From Amphiscolops sp. MND2022 (Eukaryota), in NCBI GenBank assembly GCA_964187785.1, contig OZ076413.1:25792001-25856000 (forward strand): 64,000 nucleotides of DNA. Reading direction: 5' to 3'. Shown one piece after another: positions 10,829 to 53,499 of the stretch (positions are counted from its first letter, which is position 1; the number at the start of each line of letters is the position of its first letter). A program made the translations under genes and the position numbers. The notes under the pieces were generated by a model. That model ran no database searches, had not been told where the DNA came from, and worked only from the letters and a program-made list of their open reading frames with translations.

Positions 10829-10859
10829 GCCGACTTGCTGTGATAAACCTATTGAATAG
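10829..10859 (+). other. Spliced-leader-like motif at the 5' end of LINE E
   Basis: GCCGACTTGCTGTGATAAACCTATTGAATAG is 26/31 identical, ungapped, to 38039-38069, while the following 5' UTRs do not visibly align. Confidence 0.7.
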
Positions 10860-20040: not shown

Positions 20041-22187
20041 ATTAAGTTAGGGAATTTGTTCTTGATGGGTGATGAATCTGTAATGTTGATAATCTTCGCT
20101 AGTGAATTAGTCCTTGAGGGTGCTCGAGGCCAAAAGTTTAGTCGCATTTTTTCGCTGGTTTCTTTTGGAAGAACAAATTTATTTCTTCTTTTGCTTTGCT
20201 TTAAATGGTTAAAATCTTTGCATATTTACATCATATTGACCATCAATTATGTTTGATAACATCATCAATTTCTTGAGCTCGATAAAATAAGATATGGGTA
20301 AAATTCTCAGGGTTGACAATCTCTGTTTGTAGTCGTCTCCTTATATGATCCATCTGGTCACTCTAGAAATAAACTTTTTCAATATCCTCAATTCTGATTG
20401 TTTCGGACACCAAAAGTCTGAACCGAACAGTAGGGAAGGAATGACCATGGATTTGTATACTGGCAGCTTCGACTGAGTTGATGTATTTGATGCAGAATTT
20501 CTTCTTTCCATTCGATAGACTTTATGAGCTTTAGATAGTCTTGTCTCCAGGTGGTTGTTCCATTTCAAGCTATTTATAACGGGCCCTAAGTCCGCACATA
20601 CATCCGTACAGTTCTGGCTCAAATTCTAAAGATCCTTTGAGAATGAGATATTGGCACTTTTAGGCATTGAAAAAAAACATATTGCGCTCACTCTAAGTTT
20701 GAAGTTGGCATAATTCAGACTTTAAACTATTCGCTGGGTTGTTGGGTCCTGTGTACAAGAAAAAAAGGTATTCGGCAAACAGGTATCAAGAGAAATATAC
20801 AATATTATTCGGTAAGTCGTCGATAAATAACACAAAAAAGAATAAACCAAGAAAAGAACCCCGAGGAACCCTTTTTTTTCAAATTTACTGTATTCAGATA
20901 AAGCATCATCAATTTAGACCCCCATATAACGATTACAGAGATATGATTCAAGGAATTTATGAAGTTTGGAGTCGAGTTTTTTTATTTTTTTTGTTCAAAA
21001 GAAGGTCGTGTCTGCTTGTATCAAACGCCTTTTGGAAATCGAATGAGAAGAGTGTAACGCATTCAACATTCTGAATATTGGAAAATATCTCACTTAGTGT
21101 CATCATCAGTCTCAATAATAGTGATCTACAAGTTCTGAAACCATATTGTCGTTCCTGCATATGGGGGGTGGGTTCTAGATGTCCAATAATCGCTTCAATA
21201 CAATCTCAAAAGTTTTGCTACCAATGTTTGACAAATTTATTGGGCGATAATTTTCCACTGTTTGCTGCGAACCTTGCTTGAATACTGGAATCACTTTGAC
21301 TTCCTTCCATTTCAAAGGGAATAGAGTAGTTCGAACAATTTTAAAATAAACGTTGTAGAGCGAATGAATAAGTGTATCTGCCGTCCTAACATGCCATATA
21401 GGGGGATAGCATCATGGCCAACTAACTTCACTGCAATTTGATTTATCTCATCTCTGCAAATTTCCAAGTCGAAGGATCCCGATTCAGTGTATTTTGGCAT
21501 TGTTATTGCACTGGTTTCTCTATAAATAGTTGCAAAGTACTAAATTAGATCGTGCTTTAGAACTTCTTGCAGTCTCATCCCTCCATTCTAGGTGCGGCGA
21601 GATGACAGTGCGCTTTAGCTATCTGAAGTGTTCAAACATTAAGGAGCCATTTTTGGAGCAATTGCAATATCAATCTCTTTTTTTTTCTTGAGATTATAAC
21701 GGTTTCGCTTTGAAATACTGTTTGGTTGTTTCTGATACACTTTTTCGGCGGTGGAGAGTCTATTCATTAAATTCGAGGTACCAGGTGTAATCCATGGCAG
21801 GGAGATTTCTTCTGTGTTGCGTTCGCCCTGGGTGGTAGAATCCCGCTTTTCAGGAAGAAACCAAGCATACCATTCTTCAACTGTTTGGTCACAGTTGCTA
21901 TAACATTTGGCCATGAAAGGTTGTTCAATCAAAAGTGCATTCAACATGTCGTAATCACATCTGTTGGATGAATAACTGATAGGAGAAAGTGGGCTGGATT
22001 GGAAATCATGTCGAGTAGATAGCAAACTAACTGCGAAAGTTATGGCAAAATGAACTGATTTTCACAAGAATTCATAAATTCGCTATTGACTCGTGCAGCG
22101 TCTACACAGTCAGGGTCATTGACAAACACAAGATCCAGAGTGTTCCGCTTGGTGGTGAAGAAATCTATTACTTGTGTAAGGTTGAGT

Positions 22188-22544
22188 GGCTTGCTATATA
22201 GAGATCGAATTTCCGAGGTCGAATTGAATGAGGTCGAACGGAAAGAAGTCGACTACTTTAGTTGCATTACACAGCTCGAACGAACTGAGATCGAATTTGG
22301 TAGAACACGTCGGGTCGAAGTTTGTTATCCCATTTCTCGAATGGAAACAGCATTGCGCAACCCCGCATGTTTTTTGTAAAAGAATATAAAGTCAAGACTT
22401 CGATCCCAGACAGTCGCTATATTTCCGAAATTTTCACAATTCGACACGATTCAGTTGATCTTTTTCCGGAATTTTCACTGGTCGACCCGAGGACGTACCC
22501 TAGTTTTTGACGGCCTGATGGATTCGATCCGTATCCGCGCACCC
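22188..22544. mobile_element. Mutator-like MITE inserted in the APE domain of LINE B
   Basis: 9-bp TSD AGGTTGAGT at 22179-22187 and 22545-22553; imperfect TIRs; many TCGAA/TTCGA subrepeats; removing it restores APE ...DRLNLTQVIDFFTTKRNTLDLVF. Confidence 0.85.
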
Positions 22545-23729
22545 AGGTTGAGTCTATCCACTTCATCCAAGATCTCCTGTTCATACAGATCACTTGAAGT
22601 CATTGAAATCCAATATTTGTCTTTTTCATATTAAAATCACCCGTTATCATCTTGCAATCAGCTGTATGGTTATTAATGGCTTGAAAAAAGAGGGTCAACT
22701 CGTTTATAGGTAGACGGTACGTACTTTTATCAAGTGGTTTGTATAAAAAATCAATACAAATTGTTTTACTGTGCAGTTTTATTAACGCTGCAGCCGCACA
22801 TGAGACTTGTATTTCAGTGGGTAAAGTGTCTGGGGAATACTTGAGGTCTTTGTGGATTCCTATTAGAACTCCACCATGGGCAGTTGGGTTGGGTTTGCTT
22901 TCTTTTTCTGCTCGCATTAGGCTATATTGGGGTAAATGAATTTCGCCATCCATTATTACCTTTCTTAGCCATGTTTCTGTTAAAAGGCATATGTCTGGCA
23001 TGTATTGTAGATACAGGTGGAAACAATATGACGTCTATCGGCTAAGTATATACGTTGGCAATTGAATAATATAACTTCTAGCATGATATGTAGTCAATCA
23101 TTTCGTCCAGCTTGGATCTCATTTCCATCCTTTAACAGTTTTAGATTTCTTATCTTCAGCTGTTGTCGTTGAATTCCAGAATCGATAAGCTCTTTGCTTT
23201 TAAAGAGCAGAGTTCTTTCCACTTGTCTTTCCTCATATGTTAGTGAATCCGAAATGAATATTCGTTTTTCTGGAAAGTTTTTGTGCTCAAGTGTCTTTGC
23301 TAATATTTTCCTCACATCCCATGGGTTTTTGAGCGTCGCAATTAATGATCGTGGTCGCCATTTGAGAGGATCAAATTTTCCATACGTTGAATTCCGATAA
23401 CAGTTGGATTTTCACTGAGGAATTCCATGATACCGTTCACTTTTCTTTCTTCGCAGTTCAAAGTTTGTTCTTGCTCTTTCTTGGCCTCGAGTATACGTTT
23501 ATTTGTAAACAAGTATCTTCTTCCTGGAAAAACGCTTTATGAATGATTATTCCTGCGCTTGAAAATTGATGTTTGACAAGTTCCTCGTTACACTCTGACA
23601 TGTTTTTGATAATTGCTCAATCTTGTCATGAAGAGGTTTTATAGATGCTTCATTAGTCGAATCAACACATTCCTTAATGGAATCAATAAAAAGTTAGGTC
23701 CCACATGGTTGTTGTAGATCATACTCGAC

Positions 23730-24555
23730 CATGAATTTAATTGCAATATGCGTTATATCGCATGCGAGAGGGATATATTGCACGTTTTTTACAATAACGA
23801 TGTGTAAAATTTTGCTATCGCAATCTAAGCAATGCGATATATTTATATTTTATGCAAAAACTGATATATCGCATCATGTTTCTGCGATACTTCGCAAAAA
23901 GCGATGAAAATGCGTTAAATCGGGATATAGTAAACCGGCGTTACGAAGACCAGCGTATCGAGTAAAATACAGCGAGACAATTGAGAACTTTTTTTGAGAA
24001 ATTTCGGCATCAACATGAATAAGAATAAGTCTGTAAAATCATGCCTTTGTTGTGTTTTTTTTCAGACATATGAATGATTTCGAGAATATAAATTATGATG
24101 ACTTTAGCAATATCACTGATGAAGGGAACACAACTGACGATAGTGTGTTAGTCACAGGTTCAAATATAATGTCGCCAATTTGCATATGTTATCTGTCCAT
24201 GTGCGTATTGTATTGTATTGTAACGTAACATGCTTCATTGTCGCATTTGCAGTCTTAAGTTTATTGTTGTTGTCAAGGTTGTCTTATCAGTTGTTTAGTT
24301 ATTCAGGCAAGCTCAGCGGTATCCAATCGAAACTTTGATATATTAAAGTCCTTTTTTCAAAAAGTACGAAGCGAGCTTGAACTTTTGATATTTTAGAGGT
24401 TTTGCGTCTAAAGAGCGATAAATCATTGCAATGTTTTCAGAAAAAGGGATAGCGATAACGTTAACTTTTACTGAACTTCGCTTTGGCTGCGATGCGATGT
24501 TTTTTAGAACACTGCGATAGCGATGTTTGAAAAAAGCAATGTATCTAAATCCTTG
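23730..24555. mobile_element. hAT-like non-autonomous DNA transposon in ORF1 of LINE B
   Basis: 8-bp TSD TACTCGAC at 23722-23729 and 24556-24563; degenerate TIRs CATGAATTTA.../CAAGGATTTA...; clusters of GCGATA subterminal repeats. Confidence 0.8.
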
Positions 24556-25076
24556 TACTCGACCAGTTGTAAACAGGAATCGCAGAACCATAGGCATCCT
24601 TTGATTCTTCCGAGATGGGGGTACACTACTTTCGTCACGTCACTACAGGCCAGATGGAACCAGTTCATGAACTTTGAGCACTGTACTGCATGAGAGTTGT
24701 CGGACACACTGGTTGTACATTTTCCACAATGTGGGTTTTGCTTGGCAAGCGTCCCCGTCCACGTGTAGCATGTATTTTATCTCAAATCTATTAAGTATTT
24801 ATTTATGGTCGGGGAAGCGGAGAGTCATCATTGTTCTTGCCAATGCGAAAAAGATCCTCGATTTTGACTTTCACATTTAAACGAGTTTATTTCACATTGA
24901 CAAATGAGTTTATTTGACTAATCTCGTGTCCTTTATTAGATGTACATTCTCTTTTCCTTCAGAAATGCCTGTAACCATTATATCGTAGTCACAGTTATTT
25001 TCTTTGTCGGTAGAACTTCTCATTGGCGTAGCTCCAGGTTGAGAACGGTTACTCTCAGGGGATATCGTTGGCTTCG

Positions 25077-25102
25077 ATTGTTGTGATAAACTTATTAAAT
25101 AG
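25077..25102 (+). other. Spliced-leader-like motif directly fused to the ORF1 ATG of LINE G1
   Basis: ATTGTTGTGATAAACTTATTAAATAG immediately followed by ATG at 25103. Confidence 0.75.
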
Positions 25103-27270
25103 ATGAGATATGGTGGTGTGCCGATAGGAAGAAGCCCTAGTGGGTTTCAGAGGTCGTCCGAATATGACAGGGGAATCACGATGAAGAATGTACAACAAAT
25201 GACAAGGCATCGCAAAGCATTTGCAACAAGTGTGATGTGGAGGTACTAAATGGTCATTTGGCAATAATGTGTGACATGTGCTCTATATGGTTTCGTGAAG
25301 AATGTTCGGGTTTGTCCAAAAAGCAAATGAATGTCATCGGAGAGATCGACGCTTGCAAGTGGTTGTGTGGTTGTGTGGTTGGTGTCTGGACAATGTGGAT
25401 GATCGTCTCAAGTGTGTTTCTAACAATCTAGAAATAAAGAAGGACATCGAAGATATAAAAAGATTAGTAACCTCGTTTAATACCAATAAACCCACTTATG
25501 CATCCAAAGTTTCGGAAAAACCTCCCACTAATGTAAATGAAACTTGCACTGATAATCGTAACTATTCTGATGAACAAACACTGTACATTTCAGTCACAAT
25601 AGATGATGATATACTTTCTTCTAATGTATTACAAAAACGGAGGCTGTATACTCGTTTCCCCGGTATCAAACTTGATTTCACTTTTACCAACGAGCTTGGG
25701 GAGATTGTACTATTATTTAACAACAAATACTGTTGCACTAGAGTGAAAAACAAGTGGTGTTCGAATCTTCACGGACAGAAACTAGAGTTTTCCCACCGAA
25801 TGAAAGCAGATCAAATAAAGGTATAATCCGAGATGTGCCGATTGAAATTTCCACTATATATCAAAGGCGGAAAGGTCATACTTTTATTGGAATTAGTTTT
25901 CCAAAGAGAATGCACATTTAACGACTACCTTCAAAATGGATTTACGCTAGAGTATATGTTTTTCAAGATGGACCCAAAACGTACCACCAACGGATTGTTC
26001 AATGTTTCAACTGTCAACAATGGGGTAGCCATGTATCCAAAATTTGTAAAAACCAATCGTGGTGTGCCATCTGTGGCTACCAGCACCCAACACACCGTCA
26101 TAAAGAATATGTATGCCAGGAAAAGCATGAACAAGCAAAAGATTGTATCTCACCAAATGAAATCTACTCTGTCAATTGCGACAAGGATCACACAGCATTT
26201 GATAAAAACTGCTAATTGTACCAGGAAATATTGAAAACGTTGAACAGAGTCAACTCGTGATGAAACAATTTCTCTTAGCTATGAGTGTAAGTATTGCTGG
26301 TCTCTCCGCTCACTCGTGTATTGCTATAGATAAATATAAAAACGACAACAACATGAAAGTTATTAGGTCTCTGAAAGTTATGGAAATTATCTGGGTTTTG
26401 GTAACTACGACATCTACCGCGGCCAGTTAAGCAATCTTGGTTGCTCCTCATACACAAACAAATAATATCCTATGAAGTGAAAATAACACCCAGAGAAGGC
26501 GTTAATTGCTGTTTTGCAGCAATCTCTATTGAAAAAAGGAATTTTTCGCTGGGATCAATTTACGTACATTTAGGAAACAGTGAAAACATCGAAAGTGCCA
26601 CAGATGATCTGGCCGAAACGTATACGTTATAGAAAATTGAGAATAAAACCGGACCAATAATCTTCGGGGATTAGAATTCGGGGGATCCGCTATGGAGCAA
26701 CAAACTAGAAAAGAAATATGGTAAAATACTCGCCGACTACTGTGCCGAAATTAGTCTTTCTATAATAAGCCCTCACCAGCCCACTTTTGTCTCAGCAAGC
26801 GAGAAGGTAGCAGCAAAATCGATTTTTGCATCACTGAACAAAATTGCTCTGATCTGGTATACAATGCACGAGTGATCGAAGATATCGGTATCTTCTCTGG
26901 TGCTCCAGAGCAAGGTCATTGGCTTGTTCTATTTGATATAGATATTTCTGTGAAATATGATAATCCAAAACGGTGTGTGCTAAACTACGAAAAGGCAAAT
27001 TGGGAAGAAATAAGTATACAACTGGAAAATATTATGGTGGAGAACATGGATAGCATGATAACGGAAACACCTACGAAAGCTCTCTTAACATTCTTGGGCC
27101 TACTGAGAGAAGTTTGTGAAAATTCCATTCCACGAGAAACACTTCGTAAATATTCCAAACTATACTGGAGCAATAAATTGACTCACTTATCGAAAAAACT
27201 GAAAGATTCACCCAAAAAATACAGACTCCAATGTAACCCGAAAAACAAAAACCTTGTTGAAATGACAAAA

Positions 27271-28165
27271 GGTATTGATTACAAGACCAAATTTTTTCGC
27301 GCTTTTTCAATGCCAATGTGAAAATTTCGCTACGTTGAGCTGGAATCAAAAATTCTGCGAATGTGACCACTGATAATGTTCCGTTTGTACGTCATAGGGG
27401 CAGATGCTCTGACTGATAGTGATGTTCCTGTTTCGGTAGTCTTCGAATACTAACCTGTAGTAATTCTTCCACTGTTTGTTCTGATGTTCATGTCCAAAAA
27501 AGGCGATGTTCTGTTTTCCGGATCTTTCAATTGTAAACTTTAAATTAGGATGAAGCGTGTTGATTTTTTGCGACAGACCATCAATCTCGGATGTTCTTCC
27601 TGATTTAATTATGTCGTCCACGTACCTGGCAAAGAATTTTGAACGACCAGAGTCAGTTGTCTCGATCTGATCACACCCACAAGACCATTCGGAGTCTCAC
27701 CCGATGTCTTGATCTCGTTCAGAGACAAATTGGCATTTCCTGTGGAACCAACGATTGCAGGTGTCGCATTGTATTGATGAAACAGATGACAAAACCTTTC
27801 TACTGCAATTACCACAAATGTAATCTAAATGGGCAGTTAATGTAGCCAAATCACAATCTAACCGCATTTCGAACGATTTCACCCATATGTTCGCTAGAAT
27901 AACGGCCATTGACGCATTGACGCTCCCATCGCCACTCCGTCTTTTTGAACATTCCAAACGCAATCAGCTAGAAACCTTTACGTTTTTCACAAACAAAATC
28001 AACAAGACGTTAAAGGTGGAACGGGACAAATCTATGTCCTTTTTGTGACGAAACAAATGATTTACAGCCATGTCGATTGCTTCATCAACAGGTACAATTG
28101 TATACAAACCTTTTACGTCTAGCGAAATACTTTCGTCGTCTTCATCTAGAGTAACAGTGGTTTAT
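27271..28165 (-). mobile_element. Penelope-like (PLE) reverse transcriptase fragment with an embedded PHD finger
   Basis: Motifs in order: SLDVKGLYTIVP; QKDGVAMGAS/MAVILANIWVKSFE; CGNC..CDTC.RWFHRKC..WSCGC; ARYVDDII; INTLHPNLKFTIE; IAF(L)DMNI. This series is characteristic of PLE RTs. Frameshifted. Confidence 0.85.
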
Positions 28166-29539
28166 ATGGTCCAATAATAGCTCCTATAAAATCTTTTTTA
28201 TCGAATCGGAAAGTCAGTATTCAAGTCAATGATTATATCGACATGTCATTTGTCCCTCTTAGTGGTTTATCTCAGGGGGCTGTACTGTCACCACTTTTGT
28301 TTATATTCTATATGAAGGGCTTCCTCCAAGATGCAGACTTAACATATAAGTATTCAGATGACAGTACTTCTCTTTCCAGCAAAGAAAACCTAAGTACATC
28401 TTTAGAAAAGGCGGAAAACTATACATACAAATAGAGGCACGTGCTGAATAAAGACAAAACTGAACACATAAAGTTCTCAAACGAAGTATTTCGGTCCGAC
28501 TATAAATTTGTTGAGAGAAGTAGAATATTGGGCCTATGGTTTGAGCGAGAATTGAGTTTGAAAACACATGCTGCCATTATCTCTGCCTCAGTGGCTAATT
28601 TCTGGAAAGAAACTAATTTACTTATAACGCAAAGATTAAATCCATTTTACGCTGTCCGTATCTTTGATGCAAATGTGAATCCACGTGTAGCGTACTGTAT
28701 GATTACTTGGTTTCATCAAAACAAGACACCTCCGGACAAGATATGGTGGAGTGTTCATCAATCTATCTTTGGGATAAGAAACCACCAAGTATCGAAACAC
28801 GTAATTAGTGTTTTGAGTAATATTTGGCCTCCTTCTTTTTTTTTACACTAATCAAGTATTAAAGTTTCTACATTCAACTGCTAGAAGTGCAGATATTCTA
28901 AACCCAGGTAATTTAGCAATCATACCCCAACATATTAATATGGTGAGATTGTTTTTGGTACACAAACTTTCAGTTGTAAATCGTGATCCTGATGAAATTA
29001 AGGCAAAAACCATACTAATATGCTAGAAAATCCTCAGTCAAGACTTTTAGGAAGGAGGTGGAGGAGTATTTTAGGCACTTATGGCAACGAGAAACAAAGC
29101 AAAGTCTTATGTACTCAAATTTTTTCAGGGATCAAAGTAAGAAACAGCATCATGAAAATGCTAGCACCATATCCTAGGAAAATTTCTGTCAAAATGCTAT
29201 GTTTTCTATTGAATGATTTTGAAGTACGAGAAGTATTATTCAGAAGTAATAAGAGCAAAACCGATATTCGTCCCTATTGTAGAGTTGTCGATGATACTGC
29301 ACATTTCTTATTTTCCTGTGTCTTATACCAAGAACACCGAAGGAGTTTCATAAGGGAGCGTAAAAATCAAAAAATTGACGAAACGCTAGTTACTTTGCTA
29401 AATTGCGAAAACAAGCATGTCGTAAGGGCGGTGGCTGGCTTTATTGCAAGCATCGATAAATTCTTATAACCCTGCAATCCTCAGTTGCCTTCCTTCTGTG
29501 TCAATTCTGTTATGCTATTTTCTCCGCAGCTGACTAATT

Positions 29540-30110
29540 CTTGACAATTATGGGAATAAACTCTTTTAGCGTGTCTTCTAAATCTTTTCAAGATGTTTCA
29601 AATACGTTTTTCTCATCGTACCATGAAATACATCGAAGAAAAAGTAACTTAGCTTTCTCAACAACGGGCAAGATTTCTGGTTCCAAACCAGAGCATTCGT
29701 TGTGGTACCAGGAGTCGCAGGTGTCACATTGTACCCATTTCTCGTTTGGCCTTTCTTCGTTCTTGCATTTTGCATATTCGTTAGCATTGGAGGGTGTTTG
29801 TAGGCGTCCCTGTGTTTTAGTCCTTTTGACATTAGTCCAGTGATGTTCCAGTGGACCCGTAACGATTAATGTCCGAAGCTATTCAAGAAGTTTATAATTA
29901 CGAGCTGATCCGAGGGTGCATTCCTTCGTATTCGCTCCAAATGAAACTCAAAACAGAACAACAATTGATCGAGAGCAATACGACAGTCGGATATCGTTGG
30001 GGTTGTAAATAAGAATAAAAGCGGCTTATTGTATCCATGTTGAAGGCAAGCACAGCGGAAATATGATGTCCAGCTTGGCACCGGTATAAAGATGACAATC
30101 TATATCATCT
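29540..30110 (-). mobile_element. 5' fragment of another PHD-ORF1 LINE ('H')
   Basis: Minus strand reads EKWVQCDTCDSWYHNECSGLEPEILPVVEKAKLLFLRC at about 29630-29745; its CACTGGAACATCACTGG tract also occurs in the family A 5' UTR at 38122. Confidence 0.65.
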
Positions 30111-30339
30111 TAATTTTTTTATTCTATGTTTTTCCTCTATCAGATATCATGGATCTTCGTCATCAATCAAGTGCCATGTATATCAGCATGTTGGGGGGAG
30201 AAGACACACACCCGCGGTGTGCAACGAAAGTGGGGAACCACATACCAGCCACTATACCAGTAGACGAGTAACAATAAAAACAACCAACAAACTACTCAAA
30301 CCAGCCACTAAGCAGTCGACCGGTAGAACTTTTTATAAG

Positions 30340-32950
30340 CTGCTATGATATAAAGGTCAAAAAATTTAGGTTATATGTAATAAATTTCTTCGAACGCATC
30401 TCTGTCGCTAACAATTCTTAGAACACAGGCCGCATTGCCGATCTGAAGAGCCATTGAAATCCGTTGCTTCAAGAAGCTGCCAGCTCGTTGATCGTCGTGC
30501 GAACGATAGAGCATTTTACAGAGACGCGTGATGAAAATTTCACTGCTCTCGCCTAAAGAAACCTGTACTTCCAAGGCCACCGGCTGAAAAATGTAACCAT
30601 TGTCTATTAATTCGCGATACCTCTCAATTTTACGCGCTTCAGCCTCGGTGGCGGTGGTTCCCGGGTTGCATAAAGAACCTTGATTCAGGCAACTTGGTGC
30701 AAGAGCATCCACAATCGTGACATCCCACACCAGCTGTTTACCCATTTCCCAAGGAACCATGGTAACACCGTCTGAGCGTTTGTCAGCTGTTCGGTACAGT
30801 CCACGCGGTTCGATTATTGAAGGCAAGTCGAGAGATCCCAACGTCTGCTTTATGAGAGAATTGAGAGTAGCATGACGTGAGAAGCGACCAGCACTCTTGG
30901 TGCAAGAAAGACCGTGTAAACCGTCCCGTTCAACTCTTTTACCACAGTGGCACGTATGCGCAATGCAGATGTTGGTACCGAGACGCAAACCAATTGAAAT
31001 TCGATGTTGTTGATCATCAAGTTTCAGGCCTAGGTTCTTGCAAGGAACGATGTTCAGCCATTGAGACCCGAATTTACCTTGATGATCGTGGCAAATTTTC
31101 GAACGTTTCTCATCAATTCTAGAAATCAAGTCTTGGGCGGTTTTGACGAAGACAGGTTGTGTCCAATTTTTCTGGGTTCCATCGAGAAGACTTTCCTGTT
31201 CATTCGTCAAACTCAACCATTTCTCTAGAACTTTTGTAAGTGAAACATCTTCCAATGTTTCCGAGAAAATCGCCGTGAGAAAATCACTCGCACCAAAAGC
31301 TGAGCTGAGGCCAAAAGGCGGGAAGTGCTAATAATGATGCGGATGAAACCCCAAGACCACCCATCTCAGCAGGCAGAGCCAGCTGAGTACTCGAAATATC
31401 GTCGATGTTCACGTTGCACACTTTGGAAAGCTCGTCGCGGACGGTTTTGTCATATTTCTCCAAGAGAGTTGGATGATTAAAATATGTACTGGTTCTCAGG
31501 AAGTACAACAACTTTGGCAAACTGAAGCAATTTTTCAACATAATAGAACAATAGTGCGCATCTAGTTTTTCGACAATACCGTTAACTTTTTCCAGTTCAA
31601 TAATTTTCTTTTCCAAAAGGTCTGCTTGTGATTTCGAGCCGAGCGGTGAACCAAGAAAGATAAGTTCATCTTTCTTTGCTGTTTTGATCCCGGAGCAAAG
31701 TTTTTGGAAAGATGCTAAAATTGTCGATCGTCTTTTTTCAGTGATGTCACCAGGGAAAAATTTTCACATTTCGTGGGTTTAATTTTGAGTCCCAGCGTTC
31801 TTTCGGCATCAATATTTTTTTTTGAGATCTTTCCAAACGGTTCGGCAATCATCACTTAAATTTCCATCGTCTAGATACCATAAGTTTATTTTCGACTCCA
31901 AACTGTCAATCAGATCCTGAATGGAATCCGAAAACAAAGCAGGAGACTCAGGATCTCCTTGCTGGGTCCCTTCACAAGATTTGATTACTCAATCACCGTA
32001 AAAAAGAAAACTTGGCTGACTGTACGCCGAGTGTGAATACTTATAAACTTCAGGGTGTATTTCAAAAACTTTCTCTAGCATGAATTGCCGGTTTATCGAA
32101 TTGAAAGCGTTTTCAAAGCCAATTTTCAAAATTACGTTTTCTTTGGGCTTAGGGCTTTCTATCAAACAACGGAAAACATGTGAAGCCAATTGGGTAGACG
32201 GAAGTCAGTCGGAGGAACGGGATCGAAAATCAGAGTTAGTCCTCAGGTCGACATATCAAATTTTTGAATGGGATCGAAACAACTCGCATCGAAATTTTTA
32301 CAACGTAGTAAGGCAGTGTACGCCTTTGATCTAATTGCTCGGGTCTAATGGAAATAGATCTAACTGTTAGGTCTAACTTTCAGATCTAATTTTATCTAAA
32401 AAACTTAGGTCTAACCCCTTTATGATCTAATATGTGTTCTGAAAGCGAAAGTATAATGTGGGGGATATGCGGTGCATGCACGCTCGCCCTCACCGTCGCA
32501 GAGACCAGCTCCCACTACCATCGCTTCGCGATCTCCGTTCCCGCTAGGTCTTTGCTCCTGTTCGACATCGCGTAGCAAGATGTGCATATAAGCGACCCCA
32601 AGGGGCCGCGGGGCTCTAGAGGAACTAGGGACATATCCGAGGCACGTTTATACTTTATCTCACTTTTTAGTTTTAGATCCTAATTGACTATTTTTTTTCT
32701 CAAATTAGTTCAAATTAGAAGAAATTTTTAGAACTGATTATTTAAATCAATTTATTTAGATCTCAATTTTGCCCCCTCTCTTAGATCTATTCGACCTTAT
32801 TACAGCCACCCAGGCCAATTCAGCGTCCCTTTTGGTGCCTACACCTACTTGTCGATTTCCATATCTTGCTTGACGTGATTCGAACACATGGTATCCGGCA
32901 CATTTTGCGGACAATCGGCGGAAAGTGTTGCCTATAGCGATAGGACGAAG
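30340..32950 (-). mobile_element. CRE-clade-like non-LTR retrotransposon (RT, CCHC knuckle, restriction-like endonuclease), 5'-truncated and decayed
   Basis: RT LRPIAIGNTFRRL (about 32900-32945), QVGVG, FENAFNSINR, GTQQGDPESPALF, WYLDDG; ORF 30371..31255 has CHC...HGLSC, RH, KRSDG, WDVT, AEARK..RY and QRISMALQIGNA, the RLE signature. Confidence 0.9.
32192..32811. mobile_element. Composite Mutator-like MITE inserted in the CRE RT
   Basis: TSD AAGCCAATT (32183-32191) vs AGGCCAATT (32812-32820); ends GGGTAGACGGAAGT... and ...TTACAGCCACCC; interior filled by a second, TAGATCT-rich element; excision restores RT ...DAELASHVFR. Confidence 0.85.
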
Positions 32951-32957
32951 TACTCCA

Positions 32958-32985
32958 TAATTGTTGTGATAAACATATTAAATAG
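32958..32985 (+). other. Spliced-leader-like motif directly fused to the ORF1 ATG of LINE G2
   Basis: TAATTGTTGTGATAAACATATTAAATAG then ATG at 32986; upstream flank is unrelated CRE sequence. Confidence 0.75.
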
Positions 32986-35900
32986 ATGATATATGGTGGT
33001 GTGCCGATAAGAAGAAGCCCTAGTGGATTTCAGAGATCGGCCGAAGATGACGCGGGGGGATTCACAAGGCAGAATGTACAACAAATGACGAGGCATCTCA
33101 AAGCATTTGCAAGAAATGTGATGTGGAGGTCCTAGATGGTCAATTAGCAATGTTGTGTGACATGTGCTCTATATGGTTTCATGAAGAATGTTCGGGTTTG
33201 TCCAAGAAGCAATTAAATGTCATCGGAGAGATCGACACCTGCAAGTGGTTCTGTGGTTGGTGTCTGGACAATGTGGATGATTGTCTCAAGTGCGTGTCTA
33301 ACAGTCTAGGAATGAAGAAGGATATCGAAGATATAAAAAGATTAGTAACCTCGTTTAATACCAATAAACCCACTTTTGCATCCAAAGTTTTGGAAAACCC
33401 TCCCACTAGCGTAAATGAAACTTGCACTGATAATCGTAAATATCCTGATGAACAAACACTGTACATTTCAGTCACAATAGATGATGATATTCTTTCTTCT
33501 AGTGTATTACAAAAACGGAGGCTGTATACTCATTTCCCCTGTATCAAACAGGATTTCAATTTTACCAACAAGCTTGGAAAGATTGTACTATTATTTAACA
33601 ACAAAGGCTGTTGTACTAGAGTGAAAAACAAATAGTGTTCGAATCTTCTCGGGACAGATACTAGAGTGTTTTCACCCAATGAAAGCAGATCACATAGGGG
33701 TATAATCCGAGATGTGTCGGTTGAAATTTCCACTGATGACATCAAGATTGTTTTAGCTGGCGAAAAAGAGGAAGAATTTCGAGTGATCCGACATATCAAA
33801 GGCGAAAAGGCCATACCTTTAGTGGAACTGGTTTTCCAGAAAGAATGCACATTTAACAAATATCTTCAAAATGGAATTACGCTAGAGTATATGTACTTCA
33901 AGATGGACCCAAAACGTACCAGCAAACGGATTATTCATTGTTTCAACTGTCAACAATGGGGTAGTCATGTATCCAAAATTTGTAAAAACTAATCATGGTG
34001 TGCCATCTGTGGCTACGAGCATCCAACAAACCGTCATAAAGAATATGTATGCCAGGAACAACATGAACACACAAAAGATTGTATCCCACCAAATGAAATC
34101 TATTGTGTGAATTGCGGCAAGCATCACACAGCTTTTGACCAAAACTGCGAAATGTACCAGGAATTGTGGAAAAAGTTGAACAGAGTCAACTCGTGGTGAA
34201 ACAATTTCTCTTAGCTATGATTATAAACATTGCTGGTCTCTCCACTCACTCGTGTATTGCTATGGATAAATATATAAACGACAACAACATAAAAGTTATT
34301 ACGATCTCTGAAAGCCATTGAAAGATTCAGGGTTTTGGAAACTACGATATCTACCGCGCCCATTCAAACAAACTTGGTTGCTCCTAGCTCATACACAGAC
34401 AATTAAACGCCTATGAAGTGAAAATAACACCAGAGAAGGCGTTGATTGCTGTGTTGCTGCAATTTCTACTGGAAAGAGCAATTTTTTGCTGGGATCAATA
34501 TACGTACATTTAGGAAACACTGAAAACATCGAAAGCGCCACAGATGTCCTGACTGAAGTGTATACGTTATGCAAAAATGAAAATATAACCGGACCAATAT
34601 TCTTCGGGGATTGGAATTCGAGGCATCCCTATGGGGCGATAAATTAGAAAATAAATGTGGTAAATTACTTGCCGACTACTGTGCCGACAATAGTTTTTCT
34701 ATAATAAGCCCTCACCAGCCCATTTTTGTCTCAGCAAGCAAGCAAGGTAGCAGCATAATCGATTTTTGCATCACTGAACAAAAGTGCTCTGATCTGGTAT
34801 GCAATGCACTAGTGATCGAAAATATCGAATACTTCTCTGGTGCTCCAGAGCAAGGTCATTGGCCTGTTCTATTTGATATAGATATTGCTGTGAAATATGA
34901 TAATCCTAAACGGTGGGTGCTAAACTACAAAATGGCAAATTGGGAAGAAATAAGTATACAACTGGAAAATATTATGGTGGAAAACATGGATATCACGATA
35001 ACGGAAGCAAGTACGAAAGCTCTCCTAATATTTATGGACCTAGTGAGAGGTGTTTGTGAAAATTTGTTTCCACGTAAAACAGTTTGTAAATATTCCAAAC
35101 CATACTGGAGCAATAAATTGACTCACTTATCGAAAATACTGAAAGATTCACGCAAAAAATACAGACTCCAATGTAACCCGAAAAACAAGAACATTGTTGA
35201 AATGGCTAAAATCGAATTCAAAAAGGAAATGAAAAAGAATAATGTCCGTTGGACGCAAATTGGCATTATGTAAATGAATGAGGATTTTTCGATAATATCC
35301 GCAAACTCAATGGCTCAATGGACCTAAATAACATAGGAGTACTTCGTCACAAGGGTAAGACACTGGAAAAGGATTGCCATAAAGCTGCGCTCTTTCAACG
35401 TATTTTCTTCGATGGTGCACACTTTACTGGTAAACTAATTGACGACGCTTTTTATGAAAAAACAAAAGAAGAAGTGAATGAAAAAGTAGCTCACACCGTT
35501 GGGGATTATTACAAGGAGGAGGTCAAGGATGGTCTAAACATGCGTATTACAATGGATGAACTTAAACAAGCCATAATGAAAATGAAGACAAACAGCAAGG
35601 GCGTGGATCCTTATGGCCTTCATTCTAAACTAATGAAGAACTTCAAATTTAACACCATTAACATAGGTTAGCACTTGATAAACAGTGCATTCTTCAAGGG
35701 GATTTGGCCATTCGATAAAACCATAGTCAAACTCTTGAAAAAGTCTGGCAAAACTGAATATTTTAATCCATCTTCATGGAGACCTATTTCACTTACATCC
35801 CATTTGGGAAAGTAGTTGAACGACTGATAGATAGAAGACTAAGATCATCAGCTATACTCGACATTGATGAGCAATAATTTGATTCTCAGCCAGGCAAGTC

Positions 35901-37346
35901 AACTTTGCACTATTTACACAAATTATAACATGATATCTTAGCAATGAAAAATTTACCAATAGCAACAGTATAAGATCTAGAGAAAGCTTTTGGCTCCGTA
36001 GATCAAATTTTTTGCTAAGCAAGCTAATAAACAGTGGTTTAAATGGGCCAATGTTAGCTACTATAAAATCTTTTTTATCGAATCGGCAAGTCAGTATCCA
36101 AGTCAATGATTTTATCGACATGTCATTTGTCCATCTTAATGGTTTACCTCAGGGTGCTGTACTGTCATCACTTTTGTTTATATTTTATATGAAGGGCTTC
36201 CTCCAAGATGCGGACTTAACATATAAGTATGCAGATGACAGTACTACTCTGTCAAGCAAAGAAAACTTAAGCACATCTTTAGAAAAGGGGAAAAACTATA
36301 CATACAAATGGAGGCAGGTCCTGAATAAAGACAAAACTGAACATATAAATTTCTCAAAAGAAGTATTTCAGTCCGACTATAAATTTGTTGAGAGAAGTAG
36401 AATAATGGGCCTATGGTTTGAGCGGGAACTGAATTTCAAAACACATGCTGCCATTACCTCTGCCTCAGTAGTTAATTTCTGGAAAGAAACTAGTATACTT
36501 ACAACGCAAGAATTAAATCCATTTTACGCTGTACGTATCTTTCATTCATATGTGAAACCACGTGTAACGTACTGTATGACTATATGGTTTCATCAAAATA
36601 TGACATCTCTGGACAAGATGTGGTGGAGTGTTCATAAGTCTATCTTTGGGATAAGAAACTACTAAGTATCGAAACACGTAGTTAGTGTTTTAAGTAATAT
36701 TTGGCCTCCTCCTCTACTCTACACTAATCAAGTATTAAAGTTTCTACATTCAACTGCTAGAAGTGCAGATATTCTAAACCCAGGTAATTTAGCAATCATA
36801 CCCCAACATATTGATATGGTGAGATTATTTTTGGTACACAAACTTTCAATTGTAAATCGTGACCCCGATGAAATTAAGGCATTATACAAATATTATGCTA
36901 GACAATCCTCAGTCAGTACTTTTAAGAAGGAGGTGGATGAGTATTGCAGACACTCATGGCAACGAGAAATGAAGCAAGGTCTTATGTACTCAAATTACTC
37001 AGGGCTTAAAGTAAGAAACAGCATCATGAAAATGCTTGCACCGTATCCTAGGGAGGTTTCTGTCAAAACGCTACGTGTTCTAATGAATGATTTTGAAGTA
37101 CGCGAAGTAATATTCAGAAGTAAAAAGAGCAAAACCGATATTTGTCCTTATTTTAGAGTTGTCGATGATACTGCACATTTCTTATTTTCCTGCGTCTCAT
37201 ACCAAGAACACCGAAGGAGTTTCATTAGGGAGCTTCAAAATCAAAACATTGACGAAACGGTAGTTGGTTTGTCAAATTGCGAAAACAAGCATGTTATAAA
37301 CGCGTTGGCTGGCTTTATTGCAAGCATGGATAAATTCTCATGGTAA
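32958..37346 (+). mobile_element. Decayed full-length LINE 'G2' (I/Jockey-group-like)
   Basis: Leader then ATG at 32986; PHD (33123..), knuckle CFNCQQWGSHVSKIC, APE (GDWN, SIIDF, GHWPV), RT WRPISLTSHLGK, DLEKAF, GLPQGAVLSSLLFIFY, YADD, C-terminal CCHC-like region to the stop at 37346. Confidence 0.9.
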
Positions 37347-37576: not shown

Positions 37577-37920
37577 GGGTGGCTGTAAATAGGTCGAATT
37601 TTTCTGGTCGAAAGGACAGAGGTCGAACCTTTTGATCGAATTGCAGGGATCGAATGGAATGCGGTCGAATTTTATCGTTTTTGTTGTATGGCTCGGTCGC
37701 TTCGCTCCCTTCGCCAAGTAGCAACATTGAGGCATGGCCATATGGCACGTCGCTCCGCTTCGCTCCTGCATTCAGGGCACTAGGGGTATGTGAACATATC
37801 TGACTACGTTATAAACATTTCGATCCGAGTTGTTTCGATCCCGTTCAAAAATTTGGTATGTCGACCTGAGGACTAACTCTGAATTTCGATCCCGTTCCTT
37901 CGACCTATTTCAGCCCACCC
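37577..37920. mobile_element. Mutator-like MITE (compact family member)
   Basis: TIRs GGGTGGCTGTAAATAGGTCGAA / TTCGACCTATTTCAGCCCACCC; TSD CCTCGGAT (37569-37576, 37921-37928), 8 bp or 9 bp depending on how a C run is assigned. Confidence 0.9.
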
Positions 37921-38038
37921 CCTCGGATATGTCCCCATTTCCTCTAGTGCCCTGAGGCCCCTTGGGGCCGCTTATATTCCCATCTTGCTAAGCGAGGTCG
38001 AACAGGAGCAAAGACCTAGCGGGAACGAAGATCGCCAA

Positions 38039-38069
38039 GCCTAATTGTTGTGATAAACCTAATAAATAG
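38039..38069 (+). other. Spliced-leader-like 31-mer at the 5' end of LINE A
   Basis: GCCTAATTGTTGTGATAAACCTAATAAATAG begins exactly where the upstream MITE fragment stops; ends in AG and is not followed by GT. Confidence 0.75.
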
Positions 38070-38235
38070 GGAAACCGGTTTATTAAGTCAACTTCAGATT
38101 CAATGATATAATACCTGGATCACTGGAACATCACTGGGCACTGGACAATTGAACTGGACCCTTGCTCTGTGACGGTCAAGTCCAGCAAACCATCAATCGG
38201 CAAACTGTTAGTTCGTTCCATTTACCATTTACCCT

Positions 38236-43026: not shown

Positions 43027-43226
43027 NNNNNNNNNNNNNNNNNNNNNNNNNNNNNNNNNNNNNNNNNNNNNNNNNNNNNNNNNNNNNNNNNNNNNNNNNN
43101 NNNNNNNNNNNNNNNNNNNNNNNNNNNNNNNNNNNNNNNNNNNNNNNNNNNNNNNNNNNNNNNNNNNNNNNNNNNNNNNNNNNNNNNNNNNNNNNNNNNN
43201 NNNNNNNNNNNNNNNNNNNNNNNNNN
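43027..43226. other. Assembly gap (200 N)
   Basis: Run of N. Confidence 1.
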
Positions 43227-45343
43227 AGTCCTTGAGGGTGCTCGAGGCCAAAAGTTTAGTCGCATTTTTTCGCTGGTTTCTTTTGGAAGAACAAATTTAT
43301 TTCTTCTTTTGCTTTGCTTTAAAGGGTTAAAATCTTTGCATATTTACATCATATTGACCATCAATTATGTTTGATAACATCATCAATTCCTTGAGCTTGA
43401 TAAAATAAGATATAGATAAAATTCTCAGGGTTGACAATCTCTGTTTGTAGTCGTCTCCTTATATGATCCATCTGGTCACTCTAGAAATAAACTTTTTCAA
43501 TATCCTCAATTCTGATTTTTTCGGACACCAAAAGTCTGAACCGAACAGTAGGGAAGGAATGACCATGGATTTGTATACTGGCAGCTTCGACTGAGTTGAT
43601 GTATTTGATGCAGAATTTCTTCTTTCCATTCGATAGACTTTATGAGCTTTAGATAGTCTTGTCTCCAGGTGGTTGTTCCATTTCAAGCTATTTATAACGG
43701 GCCCTAAGTCCGCACATACATCCGTACAGTTCTGGCTCAAAACCTAAAGATCCTTTGAGAATGAGATATTGGCACTTTTAGGCATTGAAAAAAAACATAT
43801 TGCGCTCACTCTAAGTTTGAAGTTGGCATAATTCAGACTTTAAACGATTCGCTGGGTTGTTGGGTCCTGTGTACAAGGAAAAAAGGTATTCGGCAAACAG
43901 GTATCATAAGAAATATACAATATTATTCGGTAAGTCGTCGATAAATAACACAAAAAAGAATAAACCAAGAAAAGAACCCCGAGGTACCCTTTTTTCAAAT
44001 TTACTGGGTTCAGATAAAGCATCATCAATTTAGATCCCCATATAACGATTACAGAGATATGATTCAAGGAATTTATGAAGTTTGGAGTCGAGTTTTTTTA
44101 TTTGTTTGTTCAAAAGAAGGTCGTGTCTGCTTGTATCAAACGCCTTTTGGAAATCGAATGAGAAGAGTGTAACGCATTCAACATTCTGAATATTGGAAAA
44201 TATCTCACTTAGTGTCACCATCAGTCTCAATAATAGTGATCTACCAGTTCTGAAACCATATTGTCGTTCCTGCATATGGGGGTGGGTTCTAGATGTCCAA
44301 TAATCGCTTCAATATAATCTCAAAAGTTTTGCTACCAATGTTTGACAAACTTATTGGGCGATAATTTTCCACTGTTTGCTGCGAACCTTGCTTGAATACT
44401 GGAATCACTTTGACTTCCTTCCATTTCAAAGGGAATAGAGTATTTCGAACAATTTTAAAATAAACGTTGTAGAGCGAATGAATAAGTGTATCTGCCGTCC
44501 TAACATGCCATATAGGGGGATAGCATCATGGCCAACTAACTTCACTGCAATTTGATTTATCTCATCTCTGCAAATTTTCAAGTCGAAGGATCCCGATTCA
44601 GTGTATTTTGGCATTGTTATTGCACTGGTTTCTCTATAAATAGTTGCAAAGTACTTCAATAGTAAATTAGCTCGTGCTTTAGACCTTCTTGCAGACTCAT
44701 CCCTCCATTCTAGGTGCGGCGAGATGACAGTGCGCTTTAGCTATCTGAAGTGTTCAAACATTAAGGAGCCATTTTCGGAGGCAAAGACCTTTTCTTGATA
44801 TGCAGCGAGATCTTCAGCAATTGCAATATCAATCTCTTTTTTTTTCTTGGGATTATAACGATTTCCCTTTGAAATACTGTTTGGTTGTTTCTGATACACT
44901 TTTTCGGCGGTGGAGAGTCTATTCATTAAATTCGAGGTACCAGGTGTAATCCATGGCGGGGAGATTTCTTCTGTGTTGCGTTCGCCCTGGGTGGTAGAAT
45001 CCCGCTTTTCAGGAAACCAAGCATACCATTCTTCAACTATTTGGTCACAGTTGCTATAACATTTGGCCATGAAAGGTTGTTCAATCAAAAGTGCATTCAA
45101 CATGTCGTAATCACATCTGTTGGATTAATAACTGATAGGAGAAAGTGGGCTGGATTGGAAATCATGTCGAGTAGATAGCAAACTAACTGCGAAAGTTATG
45201 GCAAAATGAACTGATTTTCACAAGAATTCATAAATTCGCTATTGACTCGTGCAGCGTCTACATAGTCAGGGTCATTGACAAACGCAAGATCCAGAGTGTT
45301 CCGCTTGGTGGTGAAGAAATCTGTTACTTGTGTAAGGTTGAGT

Positions 45344-45700
45344 GGCTTGCTATATAGAGATCGAATTTCCGAGGTCGAATTGAATGAGGTCGAACGAAAA
45401 GAATTCGACTACTTTAGTTGCATTACACAGCTCGAACGAACTGAGATCGAATTTGGTAGAACACGTCAGGTCGAAGTTTGTTATCCCATTTCTCGAATGG
45501 AAACAGCATTGCGCAACCCCGTATGTTTTTCGTAAAAGAATATAAAGTCAAGACTTCGATCCCAGACAGTCGCTGTATTTCCGAAATTTTCGCAATTCGA
45601 CACGATTAAGTTGATCTTTTTCCGGAATTTTCACTGGTCGACCCGAGGACGTACCCTAGTTTTCGGCGGCCTGGTGGATTCGATCCGTATCCGCGCACCC
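45344..45700. mobile_element. Second copy of the Mutator-like MITE in LINE B
   Basis: Same 9-bp TSD AGGTTGAGT at 45335-45343 and 45701-45709. Confidence 0.85.
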
Positions 45701-46884
45701 AGGTTGAGTCTATCCACTTCATCCAAGATCTCCTGTTCATACAGATCACTTGAAGTCATTGAAACCCAATATTTGTCTTTTTCATATTAAAATCACCCGT
45801 TATCATCTTGCAATCAGCTGTATGGTTATTAATGGCTTGAAAAAAGGGGGTCAACTCGTTTATAGGTAGACGGTACGTACTTTTATCAAGTGGTTTGTAT
45901 AAAAATCAATACAAATTGTTTTACTGTGCAGTTTTATTAACGCTGCAGCCGCACATGAGACTTGTATTTCAGTGGGTAAAGTGTCTGGGGAATACTTGAG
46001 GTCTTTGTGGATTCCTATTAGAACTCCACCATGGGCAGTTGGGTTGGGTTTGCTTTCTTTTTCTGCTCGCATTAGGCTATAATGGGGTAAATGAGTTTCG
46101 CCATCCATTATTACCTTTCTTAGCCATGTTTCTGTTAAAAGGCATATGTCTGGCATGTATTGTAGATACAGGTGGAAACAATATGACGTCTATCGGCTAA
46201 GTATATACGTTGGCAATTGAATAATATAACTTCTAGCATGGTATGTAGTCAATCATTTCGTCCAGCTTGGATCTCATTTCCATCCTTTAACAGTTTTAGA
46301 TTTCTTGTCTTCAGCTGTTGTCGTTGAATTCCAGAATCGATAAGCTCTTTGCTTTTAAATAGCAGAGTTCTTTCCACTTGTCTTTCCTCATATGTTAGTG
46401 AATCCGAATTGAATATTCGTTTTTCTGGAAAGTTTTTGTGCTCAAGTGTCTTTGCTAATATTTTCCTCACATCCCATGGGTTTTTGAGCGTCGCAATTAA
46501 TGATCGTGGTCGCTCTTTGAGAGGATCAAATTTTCCAAACGTTGAATTCCGATAACAGCTGGATTTTCACTGAGGAATTCCATGATACCGTTCACTTTTT
46601 TTCTTCGCAGTTCAAAGTTTGTTCTTGCTCTTTTTTGGCCTCGAGTATACGTTTATTTGTAAACAAGTATCTTCTTCCTGGAAAAACGCTTTATGAATGA
46701 TTATTCCTGCGCTTGAAAATTGATGTTTGACAATTTCCTCGTTACACTCTGACATATTTTTTGATAATTGCTCAATCTTGTCATGAAGAGGTTTTATAGA
46801 TGCTTCATTAGTCGAATCAACACATTCCTTAATGGAATCAATAAAAAGTTAGGTCCCACATGGTTGTTGTAGATCATACTCGAC

Positions 46885-47710
46885 CATGAATTTAATTGCA
46901 ATATGCGTTATATCGCATGCGAGAGGGATATATTGCACGTTTTTTACAATAACGATGTGTGAAATTTTGCTATCGCAATCTAAGCAATGCGATATATTTA
47001 TATTTTCAGCAAAAACTGATATATCGCATCATGTTTCTGCGATACTTCGCAAAAAGCGATGAAAATGCGTTAAATCGGGATTTAGTAAACCGGCGTTTCG
47101 AAGACCAGCGTATCGAGTAAAATACACCGAGACAATTGAGAACTTTTTTTGAGAAATTTCGGCATCAACGTGAATAGGAAGAAGTCTGTAAAATCATGCC
47201 TTTGTTGTGTTTTTTTTCAGACATATGAATGATTTCGAGAATATAATTTATGATGACTTTAGCAATATCACTGATGAAGGGAACACAACTGACGATAGTG
47301 TGTTAGTCACAGGTTCAAATATAATGTCGCCAATTTGCATATGTTATCTGTCCATGTGCGTATTGTATTGTATTGTAACGTAACATGCTTCATTGTCGCA
47401 TTTGCAGTCTTAGGTTTATTGTTGTTGTCAAGGTTGTCTTATCAGTTGTTTAGTTATTCAGGCAAGCTCAGCGGTATCCAATCGAAACTTTGATATATTA
47501 AAGTCCTTTTTTCAAAAAGTACGAAGCGAGCTTGAACTTTTGATATTTTAGAGGTTTAGCGTCTAAAGAGCGATAAATCATTGCAATGTTTTCAGAAAAA
47601 GGGATAGCGATAACGTTAACTTTTACTGAACTTCGCTTTGGCTGCGATGCGATGTTTTTTAGAACACTGCGATAGCGATGTTTGAAAAAAGCAATGTATC
47701 TAAATCCTTG
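46885..47710. mobile_element. Second copy of the hAT-like element in LINE B
   Basis: Same 8-bp TSD TACTCGAC at 46877-46884 and 47711-47718. Confidence 0.8.
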
Positions 47711-48225
47711 TACTCGACCAGTTGTAAACAGGAATCGCAGAACCATAGGCATCCTTTGATTCTTCCGAGATGGGGGTACACTACTTTCGTCACGTCACTA
47801 CAGGCCAGATGGAACCAGTTCATGAACTTTGAGCACTGTACTGCATGAGAGTTGTCGGACACACTGGTTGTACATTTTCCACAATGTGGGTTTTGCTAGG
47901 CAAGCGTCCCCGTCCACGTGTAGCATGTATTTTATCTCAAATCTATTAAGTATTTATTTATGGTCGGGGAAGCGGAGAGTCATCATTGTTCTTGCCAATG
48001 CGAAAAAGATCCTCGATTTTGACTTTCACATTTAAACGAGTTTATTTCACATTGACAAATGAGTTTATTTGACTAATCTCGTGTCCATTATTAGATGTAC
48101 ATTCTCTTTTCCTTCAGGAATGCCTGTAACCATTATATCGTAGTCACAGTTATTTTCTTTGTTGGTAGAACTTCTCATTGGCGTAGCTCCAGGTTGAGAA
48201 CGGTTACTCTCAAGGGATATCGTTG

Positions 48226-52631: not shown

Positions 52632-53499
52632 CCCTGCAATCCTCAGTTGCCTTCCTTCTGTGTCAATTCTGTTATGCTATTTTCTCCGCAGCTGACTAAT
52701 TCTTGACAATTATGGGAATAAACTCTTTTAGCGTGTTTTCTAAAACGTTTCGCGATGTTTCAAATACGTTTTTCTCATCGTACCATGAAATACATCGAAG
52801 AAAAAGTAACTTAGCTTTCTCAACAACGGGCAAGATTTCGGGTTCCAAACCAGAGCATTCTTTGTGGTACCAGGAGTCGCAGGTGTCACATTGTACCCAT
52901 TTCTCGTTTGGCCTTTCTTCGTTCTTGCATTTTGCATATTCGTTAGCATTGGAGGCTGTTTGTAGGCGTCCCTGTGTTTTAGTCCTTTTGACATTAGTCC
53001 AGTGATGTTCCAGTGGACCCGTAACGAATAATGTCTGAAGCTATACAAGAAGTTTATAATTACGAGCTGATCCGAGGGTGCATTCCTTCGTATTCGCTCC
53101 AAATGAAACTCAAAACAGAACAACAATTGATCGAGAGCAATACGGCAGTCGGATATCGTTGGGGTTGTAAATAAGAATAAAAGCGGCTTATTGTATCCAT
53201 GTTGAAGGCAAGCACAGCGGAAATATGATGTCCAGCTTGGGACCGGTATAAAGATGACAATCTATATCATCTTAATTTTTTTATTCTCTTTTTTTCCTCT
53301 ATCAGATATCATGGATCTTCGTCATCAATCAAGTGCCATGTATATCAGCATGTTGGGGGGAGAAGACACACACCCGTGGTGTGCAACGAAAGTGGGGAAC
53401 CACATACCAGCCACTATACCAGTAGACCAGTAACAATAAAAACAACCAACAAACTACTCAAACCAGCCACTAAGCAGTCGACCGGTAGAACTTTTTATA

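Follow-up and report, generated by a model that had tools for sequence, protein, structure and literature searches.

The usual view is that long interspersed nuclear elements (LINEs) require an internal promoter in the 5' untranslated region (UTR), each new copy needing a start signal of its own. The 64,000-nt stretch of Amphiscolops sp. MND2022 analysed here (contig OZ076413.1, positions 25,792,001 to 25,856,000, hereafter the window) contains two insertions of a LINE family, called G, in which a short motif is joined directly to an ATG. The motif matches the spliced leader (SL) of an acoel. Comparison of the genomic copies makes it probable that the host adds the SL to G pre-mRNA by trans-splicing, at an acceptor directly adjoining the start codon, and that the SL-capped mRNA is the template for retrotransposition.

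The host leader at the 5' ends of G

The junction of the first insertion, G1 (25077-25105, plus strand), reads ATTGTTGTGATAAACTTATTAAATAG|ATG, the motif being followed by ATGAGATATGGTGGTGTGCCG. Reading this sequence against the published SL (PMC9911081) identifies nt 6-31 of a 31-nt leader at 25077-25102, without mismatch, followed by the SL-adjacent ATG (AUG#1) at 25103-25105. The junction of the second insertion, G2 (32958-32988, plus strand), reads TAATTGTTGTGATAAACATATTAAATAG|ATG, with one motif change relative to G1 and with ATGATA after the motif; here a motif search places nt 4-31 of the leader, with 1 mismatch, at 32958-32985. Since G1 and G2 are about 90% identical and have unrelated flanks, they are independent insertions. 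A further site at 48232-48260 (plus strand, ATG at 48258) is identical to the first, but it lies inside an 11.9 kb duplication of 97.6% identity (20109-31955 = 43227-55118) and is therefore not an independent insertion. The second copy of this duplication begins directly after an N gap (43027-43226), and the pair may be a real segmental duplication or an uncollapsed haplotype. Thus, all three sites read as the original prediction had it, namely leader joined to ATG in two independent insertions plus one duplicate. The leader 26-mer has four matches in the window at up to 3 mismatches versus 0.00 expected from shuffles; the fourth, at 38044-38069, caps a LINE other than G.

The published leader to which the motif corresponds is that of Symsagittifera roscoffensis, given in the genome paper as GCCTAATTGTTGTGATAAACTTATTAAATAGA together with the statement that 30.2% of genes are SL trans-spliced (PMC9911081). 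The match has 0-6 mismatches across 12 SL-capped G copies. The base that follows ...ATAG depends on the LINE family, being A in G, G at 38070 and in L003, T at 10860 and C in the relics of K-like elements. For this reason the SL exon appears to end at AG, probably without the terminal A that closes the published 32-mer, and the G joint would be AG|ATG, as had been proposed. Moreover, an A stands before every complete leader that was inspected on a LINE (L002, L003, L004, L005, L007, L008, L009, L010, L012 and L013, and 38038 and 10828 in the window), so the SL RNA probably starts AGCC. Relative to the published 32-mer, both ends would thus move by one base, giving AGCC...ATAG as the probable 32-nt leader.

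The SL RNA gene sequence is not in the supplement of PMC9911081, and an Rfam search of the window matched no family. AAATAG|GTCGAATT, found beside G2 and L009, was considered as an SL gene donor and rejected, because it is the terminal inverted repeat of a miniature inverted-repeat transposable element (MITE), GGGTGGCTGTAAATAGGTCGAA. This MITE-like repeat occupies 37577-38040, 55838-56616 and 57899-58699 of the window as well as L007:9984-10333, lies in or beside several G copies, and its AAATAG|GT imitates an SL gene donor without being one.

The census was extended with a word search using a 194-aa piece of G2 ORF1 (ORF, open reading frame), which returned 34 ORF1 fragments on long contigs of a public acoel assembly at ENA. 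Together, G1, G2 and 12 ends from loci L001-L013 provide 14 independent 5' ends, a sample from which intact copies are possibly missing since an intact ORF1 (about 370 aa) falls outside the length range of the word search for a query of this size. The SL is directly on the ATG in 12 of the 14: G1, G2, L002, L004, L005/L006, L007, two copies in L008, L009, L010, L012 and L013. These have unrelated upstream flanks, and ten of them retain all 31 nt. In L003/L011, which represent one event, the leader is followed by 65 nt similar to the start of another SL-capped family and then by the ATG; this unit was amplified later as a 2.5 kb DNA tandem repeat. The array, seen on two contigs (L003:3007-8022 and L011:2928-10491), consists of flank, leader, the 65 nt and the first 2 kb of G. 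L001 is the only end with non-SL sequence upstream (...cacagttctcag|ATG, that is ttctcag|ATG), and no sharer of this upstream sequence was found within the 14-copy sample. L001 may be a fossil of an outron-bearing source type or a copy truncated within the leader. The claim that the leader is the entire 5' UTR of family G thus holds in 12 of 14 independent copies; most copies could instead have shared a longer upstream UTR, but no such common UTR was found. As to whether some source copies have an outron in place of the leader, L001 is the sole and ambiguous candidate.

Furthermore, in L007 a target site duplication (TSD) of 9-11 bp, TCGTAGGGCCT, brackets (C)A + SL ... (CT)n. Because this TSD encloses the leader, the leader belonged to the inserted RNA. 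No clear TSD was seen in the other copies.

Origin of the leader in the genomic copies

In the mechanism that we favour, the host would trans-splice the SL onto G pre-mRNA at an acceptor AG directly before the ORF1 AUG, and the mature mRNA would have the 31-nt leader (32 nt with the leading A) as its whole 5' UTR. Reverse transcription of this SL-capped mRNA at the target would then give full-length insertions headed by the leader, which in some cases lacks its first 4-6 nt. The source copy would bear a promoter and an outron, and L001 may be such a source type. We infer the trans-splicing step itself, and the promoter and outron on the source copy, as the most likely course of events. In 12 insertions the joint keeps a single position, the exact boundary of the SL exon, and where the leader is truncated it has lost bases at its 5' end, never at its 3' end, as trans-splicing followed by target-primed reverse transcription predicts. 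Acceptor-like sequences were seen in L001 (ttctcag) and at 30134-30143 of the window (cctctatcag).

LINE copies physically joined to the leader are also found in other SL-using organisms. NeSL-1, SLACS and CZAR, from nematodes and trypanosomes, insert into SL genes with a restriction-like endonuclease (REL), and the leader beside them is target DNA. It is extremely improbable that G inserts site-specifically into SL genes in the same way. Its insertions are dispersed, with unrelated upstream flanks in the 12 copies and 3' flanks that do not continue the SL gene. The leader keeps its 3' end and loses bases from its 5' end, whereas a target remnant would do the reverse. In addition, the leader of L007 lies within the TSD, and the G endonuclease is of the apurinic type (APE), not REL-type.

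Four copies carry extra 3'-truncated leader pieces or a related motif just upstream of the full leader: nt 7-18 in L009, about nt 5-25 in L013, nt 6-13 in L012 and an inverted 8-mer in L010. These pieces look like template jumps of the reverse transcriptase, not repeated splicing cycles, because they sit on the wrong side of the leader and have lost the 3' end, the part that splicing would retain. Leader truncations and upstream pieces start at nt 4-7, which hints that the reverse transcriptase is blocked near the cap. Relict leaders, which the original prediction had suggested looking for as the mark of repeated cycles, were not found downstream of the full leader in the 14 copies. Since such jumps onto SL-derived sequence evidently happen, the leader itself could have been added by a switch of the reverse transcriptase from the end of G RNA onto SL RNA or an SL-bearing mRNA, as in U6/L1-type chimeras. 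However, a jump onto SL RNA would bring in part of the intron and variable joints, whereas the observed joint keeps one position, the exact exon end, in 12 copies. We therefore give this origin a very small chance.

The A that precedes every leader would also be expected from a fixed transcription start. This is what a source copy fused behind the promoter of an SL RNA gene would provide, the leader being transcribed as the first 32 nt and never spliced on. Its daughters would be inert, as the promoter would lie upstream in the SL gene, and this fits the star-like tree of the copies. However, several unrelated LINE families are joined exactly at the exon end, and a separate exact fusion would be needed for each; moreover, SL gene upstream sequence beside SL|ATG was found in no copy. 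The motif 5' of the L003/L011 leader was considered as an SL gene promoter and rejected: in reverse complement it corresponds to the very high-copy repeat at 30129-30420, not to an evident SL gene. Such a fusion is therefore improbable, and trans-splicing of G pre-mRNA remains the preferred explanation.

An extended version of trans-splicing would make the SL-capped daughters themselves sources: read-through transcripts would be re-spliced at the relic AG, regenerating SL|ATG and keeping the family promoterless. Such a loop is free of contradiction, since the only AG in the leader is formed by its last two bases and re-splicing would restore an identical sequence; by the same token DNA alone cannot prove the loop, because re-use of the terminal AG would leave no trace. 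The share of host genes that are SL trans-spliced in S. roscoffensis (about 30%; PMC9911081) speaks for re-splicing, as does the AG kept in all 12 SL-capped copies, but in old copies such conservation is no more than chance would give (about 0.3 by our own estimate, with about 5% decay per site). All leader variants are private to single copies and the leader thus looks renewed, not inherited, although private variants fit one source equally well. Furthermore, the 13-copy tree, built from 1.3 kb and resolving little, is star-like with very short internal branches and contains no pointer to many daughters as sources. The tract before the relic AG (TTATTAAATAG) is also pyrimidine-poor compared with the acceptor-like sequences of L001 and 30134-30143. 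On balance, recurrent re-splicing of daughters seems unlikely.

Start codon, reading frame and promoter

In both window copies, the frame opened by the SL-adjacent ATG stops after 48 codons and the ORF1 that encodes a PHD finger lies in another frame, where it is preceded by a TGA (25165 in G1) and lacks an ATG. The shift between the two frames comes from a hypervariable G-run after GAC, about 65 nt downstream of the first ATG. In G1, a second ATG (25164-25166) and the G-run (25170-25173, 4 G) form a plus-strand feature at 25164-25173; many family read contigs have +G or +GG behind 25169, with +G in a large share of the family. The run measures 6 nt in L001, L003, L005, L012 and L013 and 12 nt in L002 and L004. 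In these seven of the 14 copies AUG#1 is in frame with the PHD finger and ORF1 reads MRYGGVPIRRSPSGFQRSAEDDGGNHN... (MRYGGV...). With the 7-nt run of L007, both L008 copies, L009 and L010, AUG#2 is in frame instead, and with the 5 nt of G1 or the 8 nt of G2 neither AUG is. The run varies even between DNA duplicates of one insertion, being 6 and 7 nt in L003/L011. In five proteins (P0002, P0007, P0011, P0012 and P0015), an N-terminal MRYG(G/S)V or MRYCSV reads in frame into the PHD finger.

The state with AUG#1 in frame is also present in the most divergent subfamily (L005, 64% ORF1 protein identity), and the 12-nt state is an in-frame doubling. Because of these two observations, AUG#1 is likely to be the ancestral ORF1 start. 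The proposal that the leader-adjacent ATG starts ORF1 is thus sustained by half of the copies, including the divergent subfamily, and does not hold for either window copy, where this ATG is out of frame.

Some observations weigh against the picture drawn so far. The five copies with a 7-nt run put the second ATG, which has a good A at -3 (GAAGATGAC), in frame, whereas AUG#1 has a weak context with U at -3; since the 7-nt run brings the second ATG and not the SL-adjacent one into frame, either may be the functional start. The SL as published closes with an A and, if this base is real, the joint shifts by one base. Finally, none of the 14 copies has both ORF1 and ORF2 intact, and a recurrent source with an outron was not found among them.

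The frame analysis also bears on the promoter. Over the 85 nt that follow the ATG, the L005 subfamily and the remaining copies share 94% identity, whereas the next 600 nt are only 53-80% identical. These almost unchanging 85 nt thus stand out between two subfamilies that elsewhere differ by 27-47%. L005:103-190 and L006, from samples ERZ17082352 and ERZ27289571, share the leader and the near-identical first 85 nt with G and diverge sharply after a 12-nt insertion. This pattern could reflect either exchange of the segment as a module between subfamilies or constraint at the nucleotide level, and these 85 coding nt are a candidate site for an internal signal. Hence, the argument that G has no room for an internal promoter is correct for the UTR but overlooks a near-invariant beginning of the coding sequence. 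Alternatively, G might be truly promoterless, insertions in transcribed regions being rescued by trans-splicing at the relic AG while the 85 nt recruit splicing or initiation factors; we regard this scenario as doubtful.

The element, its neighbours and known systems

The domains and ends of the copies identify G as an APE-type LINE of about 4.55 kb. G2 encodes a PHD finger, a CCHC knuckle, an endonuclease fragment and RVT_1. The reverse transcriptase is recognised in the window at 36012-36662 (RVT_1, 38.3 bits vs a cut-off of 29.6) and on fetched copies, which also have precomputed PF00078 matches. The window fragment of the endonuclease scores under the cut-off (Exo_endo_phos_2, 22.7 vs 27.4 bits), and an apurinic-type endonuclease N-terminal to the reverse transcriptase is found through precomputed PF14529 matches on L001, L004, L007 and L008. 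The canonical 3' end is a UTR of about 130 nt closing in (CTT)n or (CT)n (L002, L004, L007 and L008). These 3' tails, the TSD of L007 and the lack of long terminal repeats (LTRs) characterise G as a non-LTR retrotransposon. G is high copy from the leader to just beyond the ORF2 stop, as judged by the read contigs of four public DNA runs.

G2 (32986-37346, plus strand) runs from its ATG at 32986 through the second ATG at 33047, the 8-nt run at 33052-33059, the PHD ORF1, APE and reverse transcriptase to the ORF2 stop at 37344-37346. In G1, also on the plus strand, the ORF1 region (25103-26215; PHD finger, by a Pfam match on the G2 homologue, and CCHC knuckle) is broken by frameshifts and by an 8-nt duplication at 25359-25381, and the ORF2 region (26216-29469; APE endonuclease and reverse transcriptase) is broken as well. 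Within the latter, a low-copy segment (27334-28057) replaces family sequence, as indicated by a depth drop and a loose contig end at 27264; there the family continues GCTAAAATCGAATTC..., as G2 does. Comparison with L002, L004, L007 and L008 shows that only the first 55 nt or so of the 3' UTR are left (29470-29523), without the remaining UTR sequence or a (CTT)n tail, and a contig has its loose end at 29523.

At this point, where the G1 3' UTR ends, a minus-strand 5' fragment of a K-like LINE with a PHD ORF1 starts (29524-29905), tail-to-tail with the 3'-truncated G1. It carries a degenerate SL relic (29879-29905, minus strand; next base C) with a 6-nt internal deletion. The 12-nt repeat GGATATCGTTGG (25060-25071 and 29989-30000) was rejected as a TSD of G1, because G1 stops at about 29523 and the K-like fragment lies beyond; this exact direct repeat brackets G1 together with the K-like fragment, perhaps by chance.

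Several other repeats bear the leader. On the plus strand of the window, a full 31-nt SL heads another LINE family at 38039-38069 (next base G, first ORF 166 nt on), and a degenerate full-length relic with 5 mismatches lies on a further LINE at 10829-10859 (next base T). The repeat at 30129-30420 is present in very high copy, with a summed contig depth of about 380,000 vs about 35 for the single-copy contig at the locus. It is leader-capped in one read contig (SL + AGATGGCAAT...) and, in reverse orientation and 5'-truncated, adjoins the leader of other LINEs in L002:8182 and L003/L011. K-like elements (L003:11558 and L002:8182) read SL|CTTTAGAGATGGCAAT, as against SL|AGATGGCAAT for another unit in a read contig. 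Related 5' ends may here have two acceptors separated by 6 nt, but the sequences diverge early and their homology is uncertain.

A trans-splice site next to the AUG is common in nematode host mRNAs, where, as in G, the leader makes up nearly all of the 5' UTR. In G no base separates leader and AUG, and the gene concerned is a retrotransposon, through which the spliced form becomes fixed in DNA. A written leader is known from dinoflagellates, whose SL-tagged retrogenes carry relict DinoSL (PMC5585692, PMC6050394, PMC12014239). In both cases the host SL has entered the genome as the 5' end of retroposed copies, where it marks an mRNA intermediate and allows recycling. However, the dinoflagellate retrogenes are host genes copied in trans, and their relicts stack downstream of the new leader, since there is an acceptor AG within DinoSL. 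In G, by contrast, the LINE's own RNA is tagged, the sole AG of the leader is terminal, no stacked relicts occur among the 14 copies and the leader touches the start codon. The trypanosome L1Tc/ingi elements are likewise LINEs from a host with SL trans-splicing, and their first tens of bases are also shared from family to family. However, their internal promoter, Pr77, is reported to drive unspliced transcripts without SL (PMC1874656), whereas G copies bear the SL and lack a non-coding 5' end of their own.

Literature searches retrieved no report of LINE copies capped by a host leader in an animal, and no paper describing a zero-length own UTR or a census such as that of the 14 copies; papers on rotifer Penelope or Hebe elements make no mention of leaders either. 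The present analysis contributes the zero-length own UTR, the census with its TSD, the frame analysis, the corrected leader ends and the template-jump signatures. If daughters are indeed re-spliced, G would be a self-renewing promoterless retrotransposon, for which no description was found in the literature. Furthermore, G copies are a DNA record of the leader, suggesting that both of its ends lie one base earlier (A start, AG end) than published, and a record of where reverse transcription stops near the cap. A family without a UTR of its own, whose messenger would be completed by the host SL, can be viewed as another route to a translatable, capped LINE RNA, and it raises the question of where transcription of such an element starts.
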